The notes: generated by a model from the sequence alone, not told the origin. DNA of 64,000 bases from Saccostrea cucullata (GCF_032062105.1 NW_026932584.1:1-64000); one strand, 5' to 3'. Positions 1 to 64,000 are shown, counted from the stretch's first letter. A program made the numbers and translations.

Positions 1-3000
1 ATAAGGCCAGTTGTCAAATGGATTGTAACGATAAGTTTGTTTCGCTCGTGTAAACGCAATTCATTGACTAAATTTAAAAAAAAATGTCAGTTAGAAATAC
101 ATAAATTGTACGTTACCATACGTAACGTACATTTCAAATATAAAAATCAATTCTCTTCCACAAGCATACGTTAGACACGCAATATATTGATACTATTTGA
201 ACCTGCATATCATAAGAAATGCATCATACAGGTTTCGTATTCAGAAATATATACCAGGTATCAAAATTATATTACATAATAATTGACCTTAATATTTTTT
301 TTCCTCAGCAGAGACGTTTCTTTTCATTAATTTTGGGATTTAGCCGACCTCCAACCTTTGAAACTTTCCTTTGTGTACACATTCGAGTGTGTGAAAGTAT
401 TAGAATACATGAAAATTCGTGCGAGATTCACTTAATTCGAATTTCATCGTAACGTACATTTCAGTCACGTACATTTCAAATGATCACTTTTCATGTAAAA
501 AATAATTTTTAATTGTGTTAAGCAAAACGTCTTTGCCAGTTTACAGGATACAAGGGGTTGCTTATTCAGAGTCGTCTCATATTTTCTACTTAATATGTAT
601 TCTTAATGGAAGAATATAGGTAACGTACATTTCTTTCTTATCTCTACGATTGAAAATGTCTTTCATTCCGTAAACATATTTATAAAAGTTGCACAAGTTG
701 TTCAGTTTCATGTTACATTATCTAAGTAGGAGTAATTAATCCTTTGAAATTTCAAATTTAGCCCATCAATAAATAAAGGAGAACAAAACTATCAGGTGTA
801 TAATCTTTGTGTTTGCTTGTAATGTGGTTGAAATAGAATTAAGCGACAGGGACATTGTACAATAAAAATTATTTATTATCACAAAGAAAATGTATTTATT
901 GTTATGAAAAGAAATATATATGATATAAGGTTTAACTTATCAGAAAATTTTTACTTGAGAATCAAAACTATATATTACACAGAGGGGATTCAGAATGATA
1001 TACGAAGTCAATGCCGTAGAATAACGCAACATTGCAATGGCAGCATAGGTCTTTAGTTTCGTTTTACAAAACAATTGGGTGTATTAAAATGCTTTTGTTA
1101 ACGTCCTTAATTTTTTTTGTAAATCGGATTAAAGCAATTGAAAGGCCAGTGACTGGTAAAGTATGTACAGCCATGATATTAAATGATTCACCAAATTGTT
1201 TTTTTTTTAAATTACATAATAACAGCTCTTAGTTTCTTTTTTCTGTTGCATGTTCATAGAATTTAATACATGTAAAAATTTAATCAGTCAATCCAGCTAC
1301 CGTTCCGTGCATGTTTCATGCAGAGATGTTTTATGGTTGCATCTGTTGTCTAGTGACATTACAAAAGCCACAGAAAGACAGGACCCCAGAGGTTAACCGT
1401 AATTCTAAAAAGTCAATGCTCTGTCGCATCCCAGTAAATTCGGTATCTATGACAATGCAATGTATTCGATGCTTGGAGATTATCCGAATAACAAAGATGA
1501 ATACTGATAACCTTTGTCATGGTATTTAGATGCACATGATCTTTCTAAAATACAATTCCAATTTTTATAGAAATCGTTTAATTTGGATGTAAAATATAAA
1601 CCTACACGATTTGATGGTGCTTTAAAAATTCATTGCGTGGATATAAGGTCAAAAAAATTATCTTTCTAATTTAAAGAATGAAAACATTCAAATATGAAAA
1701 TTTCATTTGACAAAAAGCAACAAATGGGGTGACTCATTTGTATGGAACTAATAATGTAATGAAAATTGCAGTGTATAAAAACAGACAAGTAAACTGGTTT
1801 AAAAAAAATTCTTGCCATTTCTAAGCATTGCAATCAATTCTAATCAATATATGAAATCTCGTTTCAAAATTAATAGCAACAAGTTGGTCCAAAAAGTCAG
1901 GCTTGATTAGGAATGTATATTCAACAAACAGTGCTTTAATGAAATTGGTCATCAGTGATTTCCAATTTGATTCATCATTCAGGAGAAAAGTAATTCAACC
2001 TTTCCATTTTAGCTACTCTCTAGAATAATGTGTTTATTTATGGCATTGCATCAGTACTACTAACCTAATTTTCTCGCGTACTGCACACTCTTACGATGTA
2101 TCACATTAAGGAAACTCAAAATACACACATCGAGCTAAACTATTTAATTAGATACAATGAAATATTGGTGTTCTTTCCTCCAACAACTGTTGGACATAAA
2201 ATGATGCGCTTAACAAAATGCGCTTAAAGAGATTTTAACACTAAAAAAAATGTCTAAGAATACATCAAAGATATGAATTTTTTTTTTAAAATTTTTCTAT
2301 TTGTCAAAGTCTTGGAAATTATATTGTTTATCAGTTGAAACAAATAATTACAAAATTTCATCAATAACTAATTAATGTAAAAGAGATCCCGAATGCAAAT
2401 AAAATTGTTTAAATGACATAGGTAAAAATTATAAACAGGTCATCTTGGGCTGGGATCTATCTTATTCAATCTACAAACAATTAGAATATTGAAAAGGGCA
2501 GAAAAATATGTAGCCTTGGAAACTCAAGATGTAAGATCAGGTGATTAGGAGGAGTAAGCATTTCTAGTCGACCGAATACACCCACCGTGAGCCCTATGTT
2601 TTAATTATGAAATGTTGACATTAACCAGAATGTTGAAATTATTGTAACATCAACTTATTGGCTAGTAGTAGGCATCTGTTAAACTTTGAAGTTACTCAGA
2701 GCATGACCTTGAGTTTTCAATAAGCACCAAAGGTAGGTTAATCATAAATCATATATATGCATATCACAACCGAGCTAATAGTATGTTTGCTAAACACAGA
2801 TGCCCCCGAACCTGACCTGATTTTATGCAATCAAATTTGCTGGACATAAATAAACATCTGTTGATATGTAATTATATACAAATATCAGAGACGAAACCAG
2901 AGAGATCTCAGTTTTAATTAAGATTAATGAGCTAGATAGATAGTTTTTAAATATTTGAAAGTTTTTGACGATGAAGAGGTTGTTTTTATTCATATTTCGA

Positions 3001-3204
3001 ATGGATAAAAATCTTTTTGAATAAGTTATATTACAGTTTTTTATATCATGGCTAGGGTTTTAGTTTATTATGCTTATTGTGTAGAGGGTTAAAATGACCA
3101 AAAAATCTTTTGAAATTTTCATGTATATCTTTTTCTAATATGTTTGGTTTAAAATGCAAGAATTAATCTGAGTTCCAATGAGCAATATCTATTTCCATCC
3201 ATTT

Positions 3205-61234: not shown

Positions 61235-64000
61235 AAAAGATTTTATTTCAATATTGTCTATGTTAAATAAAAGATTTTATGACTATGGAGTATCTATTAT
61301 TTATTGGTAAACGGCAATAAAGAGAATATAAAAGTTTCAAAAAATTCAAAGACTTTCAGGAAATATCCCCTTTCTCTGTTCTACTCTAAAATATTAAAAG
61401 TAATTAAGTTTTAGATTGAAATAATTTTTTAAAATGCATGAAAATTTAAAAGAAAAACTGATATCATTTTTTTAAAATGGTAAATATAAAACATAAATTT
61501 AATTTTAAAAAAATAAAGAAATACCTGTAGTAATAATCATTAGATTTATAACTTTATAGCGGCTGTTATGATTTACATTGTATGTTTTCTAAAGCACAAA
61601 AAGGTATCACTCCTTTTTTTTCTACAGTATTTTTCGTTCCAATTCATCCATCATAAGGAACATTTTAAGAAATGTTTGTAATGAACACATTTCGAAAAAA
61701 TAAAAACCAACTCATCATTTAAATGAAAAAGTGTACCTTTGATATGCAAAAATCACAAGTGAAAACCTTAAAAGCAAACTCTTCATGTAGGACAAACAAT
61801 ATACATAACGCCTTAAAAGAATACCTCAAATATTAAATTTTACAGTTATAATGGATTAATCATTATAACAAATTTCATAGGCCAGGAATGAAGTTCGTGT
61901 CATAGGAATTGCCTGTTATTCTTTTTCAAATTGTTGATAATACCTCCCTGTCACAAAAATATTGTTTGTTTTTACGTTAGAAACCATCTTTAATATCATT
62001 ATTTTATTGTGAAATGTGGACTTTGATGATTATATTTTTAACATAGGATTAAAAAAAAAAAAAAAAAAAACCACACACATCGATCTGTGTAACTTCATCT
62101 CTCAGAGGATTATTATGAAATGTTGAAGTTGTTTTTAAAATAGATTTTCTGTAATATTTTTATGGAAGTTATGAAGAAGAATTCGGATAATATTTACTTG
62201 CTGCGTGTTATTTTCTATTTTGCTTTTGTCCCTTAAAAACACGAAAATATAGATTAAATTAGATCCCTTATTGTCAAGATAAGGTACATGAATAACTGAA
62301 TTCTGCAATTCTCATGTTATGTAACTGTCATTTATCATGTTATGTAACTGTCATTAATCAAATTATTTTTAGGATGTTGAAATTAATGTCTCAGTTTTTG
62401 GAAACCTGTATATATAAAATATATTTTTAACGACAAAAAGGAGGTTCACAAGTAAGTCAAATCACGCAAGCTTAAATACACTGCACTCGTGCCAGTTGTG
62501 TTGATTTTAAAAATATACGTAATGATGGTCTCTATAACAATATAGAAATCAACCAACGTATTAATATTGAATTTATTTTAAAATATTAGCCGTAGAAAAA
62601 TTGAATTTTAGCTCTTGCTTTTTATCTTACACTTTGTTTTCATAAGTTTTATCTATCCATTTTATTTTCCAAAATGCATTTTCCGATTACTTGATTTTTT
62701 CCCTAGGTGCATGGTTAATGCACATATGATGGATTTGTGAAAGAACTTTTAAAAAAATGTAGTTTCTTACGATCTTTGAAAAAAATCGAAAAATTCTTTG
62801 TTCGGTTTGGTTTGTTAATCAACTACCAAATAAGGACATCTGATCCTCAACCAGGAAGGATAAATCCAAAAATTAATATTTAATTAGAAATGCATCAAAA
62901 TGAAGCTTGAAAATGAATTTTTTCATGCAACAATTTTCATTTTATTCATCTATATAAGATTCAAGTTTTTGGAAGTCTTAGAAAAGGACTTATAAAAGGG
63001 AAAAAATTATACCGTTTTAGAGAAAAAAGATTTTCGTTAATCCATCCTTAGATAACAATGCTTATTAGCGTGATATGAAATGAGAAGTGATTTGTGGTGT
63101 CTTGCAATGATAGCAAAAGCCTTTTACACTAAGTATTATAGAATGCATGACGGAAACAGAATACAAAAAATACCAAATAAGTATAAAAATCATGACAGTT
63201 TCTATGAATGCCTGGATACCTACCGTTTTTTTAAACCTAAAATATATTTGTTGATCAATTTGCAATTAGAAAATGTATTGCTGATATTCCAATTTGCTTT
63301 TTCTGCAAAAATGTTGGAGATTTGACAATTTCCCCTATATAGTATGATTAACTTTATCTCTAAAAGGAAATACTGAGGATAAATTTAAATAACTTGTAGA
63401 TTGAGATATACTTTTTTGAGTATTTTTGATTACTAGTACTTAACTGCTAATTTTATAAACCTGATAACCGTAAACAACAGGATCCATTCGTTTAAAACAA
63501 ATATTCAATCAACACTTCTAAATTGATACTTTTGCTATATTTACTTTTTTTTGACATTTTTCAAGTTTGTAAATAGTAAACTATACGTTTCTTCTACATT
63601 AAATGGCCAATAATTCTTGTATACTTGTTCATAAATATTCATGCCCATCCTTTATACATTTAGAACAAATTAGATGTCGATAACGATAACATAGACAATA
63701 TCACGTCAGAATCGTATCGATAGTGATCAAAATCAGTAAATTACGAGAATTACTGGATACCTTATACAAGACTGAGTCCCATATCGAAATCATCGATATC
63801 GACAATTTTTTTCAATATCGTACTGTTAATCACTTTTAATTCGCAAAAACTTTATTTTTGAGTGATTACATGACGTGTATGTGAGTCTGTCTGCTCGCGA
63901 AAATTTTATTCTCGCGTATATATGTATTATGAAGGATTTCATACAACAGAAACCTACGCTTGAGAACATTTTGTATTAGAACTTAAGCAATGTCGATATT
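61235..64000 (+). repeat. Tandem segmental duplication, copy B (runs off the window)
   Basis: Matches copy A minus ~49651-50265, 50645-50855, ~51616-51798, ~52485-53605 and 53854-54659. Confidence 0.97.

Follow-up and report, generated by a model that had tools for sequence, protein, structure and literature searches.

TA-flanked palindromic 8-mers as probable footprints of cut-and-paste transposon excision in the genome of the oyster Saccostrea cucullata

Here we describe short palindromes of the form TA-NN-N'N'-TA in a stretch of 64,000 nucleotides of Saccostrea cucullata DNA (GCF_032062105.1, NW_026932584.1:1-64000, hereafter the window) and in the genome to which it belongs. Very probably, TACATGTA, TACTAGTA and TACCGGTA, together with the rarer TAGGCCTA and TAGATCTA, are the canonical footprints left when cut-and-paste transposons of the Tc1/mariner kind, which target TA, were excised, and the genome keeps a countable record of roughly 370,000 past excisions. 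Elements with CA...TG ends dominate this record (~308,000 excess scars), followed by those with CT...AG ends (~44,000) and then by those with CC...GG ends (~22,000). A preliminary description, made from the window alone, had proposed that many of these words mark TA sites scarred by excision, at a density of about one per 2-3 kb. This proposal is sustained by what we observe: 6-bp insertions at TA in copies of a repeat, an occupied site paired with its footprint, biased flanks and the presence of transposase loci.

The assembly comprises 1.17 Gb in 23,869 contigs, with ~33% G+C. Genome-wide word counts come from pattern searches of this same assembly, and their expectations are Markov values scaled up from a 256-kb sample, made of the window and of 192 kb taken from 19 other contigs; the scaling was calibrated on six control words, with agreement within ~25%. 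On this basis, TACATGTA is found 362,932 times where 30-70k copies are expected (~5-8x at orders 2-4), and ~85% of its genomic words exceed background. For TACTAGTA the count is 57,814 against 12-17k (3.3-4.7x), that is, 4.1x its dinucleotide-identical control TAGTACTA, which stands at ~1x (14,085 against 12-16k), and for TACCGGTA it is 28,239 against 5-8k (~4-5x). Among the G-starting words, TAGGCCTA reaches ~18-20k, extrapolated from 9,176 W-flanked matches, against 4.6-7k (~3-4x), and TAGATCTA, which the preliminary description had named as a control, 25,240 against 16-22k (1.1-1.6x). The estimated excess copies are thus ~308k, ~44k and ~22k for TACATGTA, TACTAGTA and TACCGGTA, and ~14k and ~5k for TAGGCCTA and TAGATCTA; the excess of the first three corresponds to a scar every ~3.1 kb and to 0.36% of all TA sites. 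Of the four words originally claimed to be in excess, these three stand genome-wide and TACGCGTA does not (3,504 copies against 3.1-4.3k, no excess).

In the window itself, the positions first listed by hand were reproduced exactly, with 19 TACATGTA, 9 TACTAGTA, 3 TACCGGTA and a single TACGCGTA, where Markov models of orders 0-4 give 1.7-3.7, 0.8-2.6, 0.3-0.6 and 0.2-0.5, respectively. The density of TACATGTA equals the genome average (19 vs 19.8 per 64 kb), and TACTAGTA is ~3x richer than the genome mean (9 vs 3.2 per 64 kb, Poisson P=0.005); four TACTAGTA words lie inside 1.4 kb, at 43234-44638. Furthermore, the independent 192-kb sample holds 48 TACATGTA where 5-11 are expected. Over the whole 256 kb there are 67 against 12, the fifteen other one-sided variants NACATGTN being all at expectation, and TACATGTA is the top-ranked 8-mer by z-score once low-complexity words are set aside. 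Likewise, the cores CATG, CTAG, CCGG and GGCC each stand out in one context alone, that of the palindrome with TA on both sides. What is in excess is the 8-mer as a whole, specifically with TA as its flank.

The origin of one such word can be read directly in the window. A blastn comparison of 62001-64000 with the rest of the window disclosed an intra-window segmental duplication, whose copy A (51102-55232, + strand) lies ~10 kb upstream of copy B (62001-64000, + strand, running past the window end), the two being 94-97% identical. Copy A carries an 806-bp non-coding element (53854-54659, + strand) with terminal inverted repeats (TIRs) CTGTATAGGGG and CCCCCTATACAG, bordered by TA at 53852-53853 and at 54660-54661, so that it reads gat-TA, then the element from CTGTATAGGGG to CCCCCTATACAG, then TA-cttaac. 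In copy B, TACTAGTA (63431-63438), which is TA+CT+AG+TA, stands between these flanks. Since insertion into an existing TACTAGTA cannot yield the junctions of copy A, copy B derives from the occupied site by loss of the element, and the TACTAGTA at 63431 is an excision footprint in which two bases of each element end were kept. It had been predicted that the CT-ended element at 53854 would leave this very word, and the paralogous empty site indeed reads TA-CT-AG-TA. At this one CT-type site, the extra bases are those with which the TIRs of the former occupant terminate. The 806-bp family itself has only dozens of exact ends genome-wide, each of them after TA and with differing flanks.

An abundant repeat of ~750 bp, represented in the window at 44115-44865 (+ strand) and by 17,966 first-look candidates genome-wide, served as a test bed for the spectrum of insertions. 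A 28-nt TA-rich stretch of this repeat was anchored between two conserved flanks and the genome was searched for copies of every length, the pattern leaving the inserted bases unspecified. Strict anchors returned 1,905 copies of unchanged length and 162 with 1-14 extra bases; among the 100 matches listed of these 162, +6 was the commonest insertion class (20, vs 14 for +1). The strict-anchor +6 class, complete with 38 copies, contains 16 exact conversions of TA into TACATGTA, at five TA sites, plus 7 one-substitution variants. With shorter, relaxed anchors, 48 copies with +4, 27 with +5 and 96 with +6 were recovered. By hand tally, the last comprise 34 exact conversions of TA into TACATGTA, spread across all six TA sites, and 19 one-substitution variants; 5 TACTAGTA plus 4 variants; 2 TACCGGTA; one each of TAGGCCTA, TAGATCTA, TACGAGTA and TACAGTTA; and 28 others, mostly tandem duplications. 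Recognisable TA-NNNN-TA scars, by the same tally, make up 68 of the 96.

The resulting ratio of 34:5:2:1:1 matches the genome-wide excesses of ~308k : 44k : 22k : ~14k : ~5k, and the inserted CATG, CTAG or CCGG does not vary with the flank. The check that had been proposed, namely to look for 6-bp insertions relative to repeat copies, is positive (TACATGTA in 34 of 96 +6 copies). Moreover, these copies agree with the pair at 63431 that both element-end dinucleotides are kept, for a net gain of 6 bp over the empty site, as had been suggested. What has to be dropped is the restriction of scars to C-starting words, as TAGGCCTA, enriched ~3-4x, and TAGATCTA also arise as 6-bp insertions at TA; G-starting palindromes are produced likewise at lower frequency, so that the modest excess of those words does not refute an origin by excision. 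The rate per TA site in the repeat family (~0.13%) is within ~twofold of the genome average of 0.30%. In the 256-kb sample, a comparison of paralogues identified the TACCGGTA at 44658 and a TACACGTA on one of the other contigs (L020) as 6-bp insertions, only 3 of the 67 motif sites being alignable. Aligned with nine other copies of the ~750-bp repeat, the window copy has six more bases at the former word (44658-44665), and setting the insertion at TA costs one mismatch more than the aligner's own placement. No second copy (haplotig) of 40001-46100 exists in the assembly. Other products occur at the TA sites of this repeat stretch: TACGTA in four +4 copies, the 5-bp forms TACGGTA and TAGGCTA, and the filler forms TACAATGTA, TACACTGTA and TACAAAATGTA.

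An A at -3 and a T at +3 are part of the published target consensus of Tc1/Tc3 and of Sleeping Beauty. Considering all 362,932 TACATGTA, A at -3 (and T at +3) is present in 49%, or ~45% after removal of tandem CATGTA repeats, vs 37.4% for A at -3 in all other TANNNNTA words; hand counts among the listed flanks give 55/100 for TACCGGTA and 32/50 for TACTAGTA. The flanks show a Tc1/mariner-like target preference, with A at -3. About 14% of the A-NN-TACATGTA flanks are ATG, that is, tandem CATGTACATGTA, with ~25,000 instances per side, or ~ten times what scar TAs hit again independently would produce; possible causes are that such TAs are used repeatedly, that elements hop locally, or that the 6-bp unit undergoes slippage. 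It is because of this tandem class that a reversed control word appears as biased as TACATGTA (A at -3 in 48.7%) and that the reversed word ATGTACAT (125,227 copies) shows a 1.7-3.5x excess. In addition, 4 of 50 TACCGGTA sites directly adjoin CATG(TA), as in TACCGGTACATGTA, where chance would give ~0.6% per site, which indicates that scar TAs are re-used or lie in hot spots.

As for the elements that may have left these scars, CAGT-starting sequences unrelated to the ~750-bp repeat begin right after the same TA sites in at least 6 other copies of it, right junctions of the form ...ACTG|TA matching these left ends were found, and one CAGT-starting insertion sits in the second TA of a TACATGTA. 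For the CA type, the link between scar and element is an indirect one, drawn from analogy and from the CAGT-starting insertions at the same TA sites. The 256-kb sample holds TA-flanked inverted-repeat elements with CA, CT and CG ends, located by a filtered search, as the unfiltered inverted-repeat finder returned mostly tandem-array noise. They include a CA-ended element of 1.76 kb (L004:1013-2773) whose inverted repeats are perfect over at least 28 nt and whose interior contains arrays of GCAGTCCC, a word that is among the most over-represented 8-mers of the sample. Two CG-ended, TA-flanked elements lie in the window on the + strand, one of 1,062 bp at 15797-16858, with inverted repeats (ends CGAGGGG), and one of 828 bp at 30814-31641, with long inverted repeats starting CGAAAGCCC. 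On the other hand, the CA ends that had been placed at ~32637 and 48238 have no convincing inverted-repeat partners in the window.

Genes for the corresponding enzymes are plentiful. The DDE_3 domain (PF13358) gave 1,183 candidate loci; of these, 150 were scored, all above the Pfam cut-off, and open, intact frames of 340-390 aa are found for many of them. Several groups of these loci share identical scores and frame lengths (e.g., nine with 357 aa), which suggests very recent or ongoing Tc1-like activity. The 64-kb window contains no transposase, with no open reading frame of 150 aa or more.

These observations can be accommodated in a simple mechanism. The element would insert at TA, duplicating it. 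On excision, the transposase would cut the non-transferred strand two bases inside each inverted repeat, and each flank would then keep the TA plus a 2-nt 3' overhang with the terminal dinucleotide of the element. In the oyster germ line, the two non-complementary overhangs would both be retained and joined, converting TA into TA-NN-N'N'-TA, palindromic because the two element ends are inverted repeats. The stagger of 2 nt, the route of end joining and the timing in the germ line are inferred, and end joining would presumably fill in the non-complementary 3' overhangs with no overlapping or trimming. Self-complementary CG overhangs, in turn, might anneal to give TACGTA (+4), which would explain the missing TACGCGTA; the four TACGTA insertions of the +4 class fit such an annealing product, and no k-mer excess of TACGTA is detectable over a background of ~190k.

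Taken one step further, the palindromes might constitute a quantitative ledger of germ-line excisions for each terminal dinucleotide, where non-complementary overhangs give +6 and CG overhangs +4, excision being the largest single source of 6-bp insertions. We put this forward tentatively, judging its chances slightly short of even. If it were true, excision would drive the evolution of small indels, in-frame coding insertions included, to a major extent that had so far gone uncounted, and the oyster germ line would possess an unusually conservative end-joining pathway.

Several points weigh against an excision origin, or limit what it covers. TACGCGTA is not enriched genome-wide although CG-ended TA-flanked elements exist, and, conversely, the filtered inverted-repeat search found no CC-ended TA-flanked element in the 256-kb sample. 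The bias for A at -3 is lacking in TAGGCCTA (19/50 listed flanks) and, in a small sample, it was seen in only 8/26 flanks of TACTAGTA. No CA-type pair of occupied site and footprint was caught at one locus. TACATGTA is scarce in paralogue-alignable sequence, with 3/67 sites within 27% of the 256-kb sample (P = 3e-6), and several of the tallies are hand counts from the matches listed. Finally, with its dozens of copies the 806-bp CT family is too small, and other CT-ended families must have made most of the TACTAGTA scars. The notion that each word encodes the family that left is, accordingly, too strong: a scar records a terminal dinucleotide only, as the small size of the CT family illustrates. 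It may be added that TAGGCCTA, ~3-4x enriched, does not share the preference of the C-starting words for A at -3, which may hint at another group of elements.

Among the alternatives, the one that fares best accepts the 6-bp insertions at TA as real and ascribes them to another process, such as a TA-targeting superfamily of a different kind, a domesticated nuclease, or templated or hairpin repair synthesis. It is true that the superfamily of the departed elements is established for few scars, that the G-starting words arise in the same way and TAGGCCTA shows no A(-3) bias, and that a palindromic 6-bp insertion, CTTAAG, is found at 44573, away from TA. Nevertheless, palindromes templated by the flank are excluded, the inserted letters being constant whatever the flank, and in one case a TA-flanked inverted-repeat element is directly implicated. 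Tc1/mariner is also in accord with the ends (CAGT...ACTG), with the duplicated TA, with the preference for A at -3 and with the abundance of DDE_3 genes. All this makes such another process improbable. A hAT or hairpin-type footprint, whose insert would be the reverse complement of the neighbouring flank and would vary between sites, was discarded on the same ground, since CATG, CTAG or CCGG is inserted irrespective of the flank.

Even less likely is an origin of the words inside a single repeat or satellite, or a small number of them, of very high copy number, which alone would account for the excess. Instances of this kind do exist: TACCGGTA occurs in a tandem array in one contig of the sample (L008) and TACTAGTA in a duplicated element in another (L015), recurrent flanks appear in ~10-20% of the listed TACCGGTA and TACTAGTA sites, and TATGCATA (62,938 copies genome-wide against 32-48k, 1.3-2.0x) owes part of its count to a 146-bp satellite. 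However, the flanks differ among all the word sites of the window, from which it follows that these words are not copies of one repeat; they are also mostly unique among the 50 listed genomic sites examined for each of TACCGGTA and TACTAGTA (~80% unique for TACCGGTA), and only 3 of the 67 TACATGTA words of the sample fall in paralogue alignments. As to TATGCATA, its recurrence at a ~146-bp period on several contigs identifies it as part of the satellite unit.

An origin in compositional or mutational bias, in a genome rich in AT and depleted of CpG, with point substitutions such as the CpG decay of TACGTGTA or TACACGTA into TACATGTA, is very improbable. Such a bias would agree with the general excess of CA/TG dinucleotides, with Markov expectations of orders 5 and 6 that approach the observed counts, and with the presence of TACACGTA at the same site in two repeat copies. 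But the enrichment survives background correction, being kept at Markov orders 1-4 and against dinucleotide-identical controls, the one-letter neighbours NACATGTN remain at expectation, and in repeat copies the word comes as a 6-bp insertion, not as a substitution. Lastly, that TACATGTA is a functional motif, e.g., a protein-binding site kept by selection, can practically be dismissed: the word is a perfect palindrome and locally clustered, but it arises de novo in random selfish-repeat copies at any available TA, recurs about once per 3 kb everywhere, and has common one-substitution variants (19 vs 34 exact), as neutral decay predicts.

Excision by Tc1/mariner-like elements being the preferred explanation, it is instructive to set the oyster scars beside those of known systems. 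Footprints are 2-bp for Tc1, Tc3 and mariner and 3-bp for Sleeping Beauty; Tc3 most commonly leaves TACATA or TATGTA, and Sleeping Beauty TACAGTA or TACTGTA (bioRxiv 10.1101/659086). The oyster scars resemble those of Tc1/Tc3 of Caenorhabditis elegans in the TA target, the CA...TG ends and the retention of two bases from each end in the donor flanks, and TATGTA is also seen in the oyster +4 class. Unlike Tc3, for which 4-bp forms are the commonest, the 6-bp form with both overhangs outnumbers TATGTA/TACATA ~17:1 in the oyster (34 vs 2), and its copies in the germ line have risen to about a third of a million. With Sleeping Beauty the oyster shares a TA-flanked scar with terminal transposon bases, and a few isolated TACTGTA and TACAGTA insertions are found at TA sites of the same repeat stretch; whereas Sleeping Beauty makes a 3-nt stagger, the dominant oyster scar implies a 2-nt stagger, with overhangs joined without overlap. 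As a general product in the oyster, the Sleeping Beauty-type 3-nt footprint was rejected, TACAGTA/TACTGTA showing no excess in the 256-kb sample (58 vs 50.9 expected).

The footprint of Minos is 6 bp long, with four terminal bases from one end plus TA, and is not palindromic; the likeness to the oyster lies in a +6, frame-preserving scar at TA. A Minos-type footprint for the CGAG-ended elements was likewise rejected, TACGAGTA and TACTCGTA being found 9,684 and 9,518 times against 8.2-9.8k expected.

Excision footprints as such are textbook knowledge, usually studied per event or in transgenic assays. In rice, DNA-transposon excisions have been read by genome comparison, in a survey which argues that excision shapes genomes and in which nearly all of 94 excisions were untidy, with deletions and filler, and 8 were 'perfect' (Roffler and Wicker 2015, PMC4423477). 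Unlike those of rice, the oyster scars are so uniform that they emerge as the genome's most over-represented complex 8-mer. We found no paper connecting TACATGTA or excision footprints with oysters; what appears to be new is not the mechanism, which is known, but the scale and uniformity of the scars and their spectrum of several words. The window contributes, as new, this range of words, the quantitative agreement between it and the spectrum of insertions, and a site seen in both its occupied and its scarred state.

The uniformity and number of the scars allow them to be counted by k-mers alone. They provide a direct estimate of the frequency of cut-and-paste departure (~0.36% of TA sites scarred), a handle on the active terminal types, and a natural readout of the germ-line joining of 2-nt 3' overhangs. 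Furthermore, they suggest excision as the main source of 6-bp insertions in the oyster genome, and their presence will distort searches for motifs, models of indels and dating based on alignments in oysters.

Within the window, the CA-type scar candidates are the nineteen TACATGTA starting at 1267, 8472, 10835, 10891, 14638, 14737, 17239, 22454, 28194, 29848, 33766, 40023, 40526, 45780, 48845, 50047, 50738, 53942 and 53952 (the last ending at 53959). Taken individually these sites are candidates, supported by the genome-wide excess and not by site-by-site proof. The CT-type candidates are the nine TACTAGTA starting at 9613, 17898, 21670, 29727, 43234, 43364, 43578, 44631 and 63431, and the CC-type candidates the three TACCGGTA starting at 28319, 44658 and 46044 (the last ending at 46051). 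The single TACGCGTA (46012-46019) is unsupported as a scar word, being absent among the 96 +6 variants. Relative to 9 other repeat copies, the TACTAGTA at 44631 represents a change of ~3 bp and no clean +6. The tandem TACATGTA-TA-TACATGTA at 53942-53959, inside the 806-bp element, had been taken for a second +6 scar in a newly created TA; it is instead a 10-bp tandem duplication of TACATGTATA, a unit carried once by the only other genomic copy with the same anchors (contig C9494).

Two minor features deserve mention. Copy A of the duplication has two extra segments without counterpart in copy B, one of 1,117 bp (52488-53604, including a 147-bp tandem array at 52658-53370) and one of 175 bp (51619-51793), and their junctions show short microhomology and are not TA scars. 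In turn, the window copy of the ~750-bp repeat bears a private 6-bp palindromic insertion, CTTAAG, at 44573-44578, between GAC and CTTG (GACCTT-AAGCTT-G), which does not lie at TA and looks like a flank-templated palindrome rather than a TA scar.

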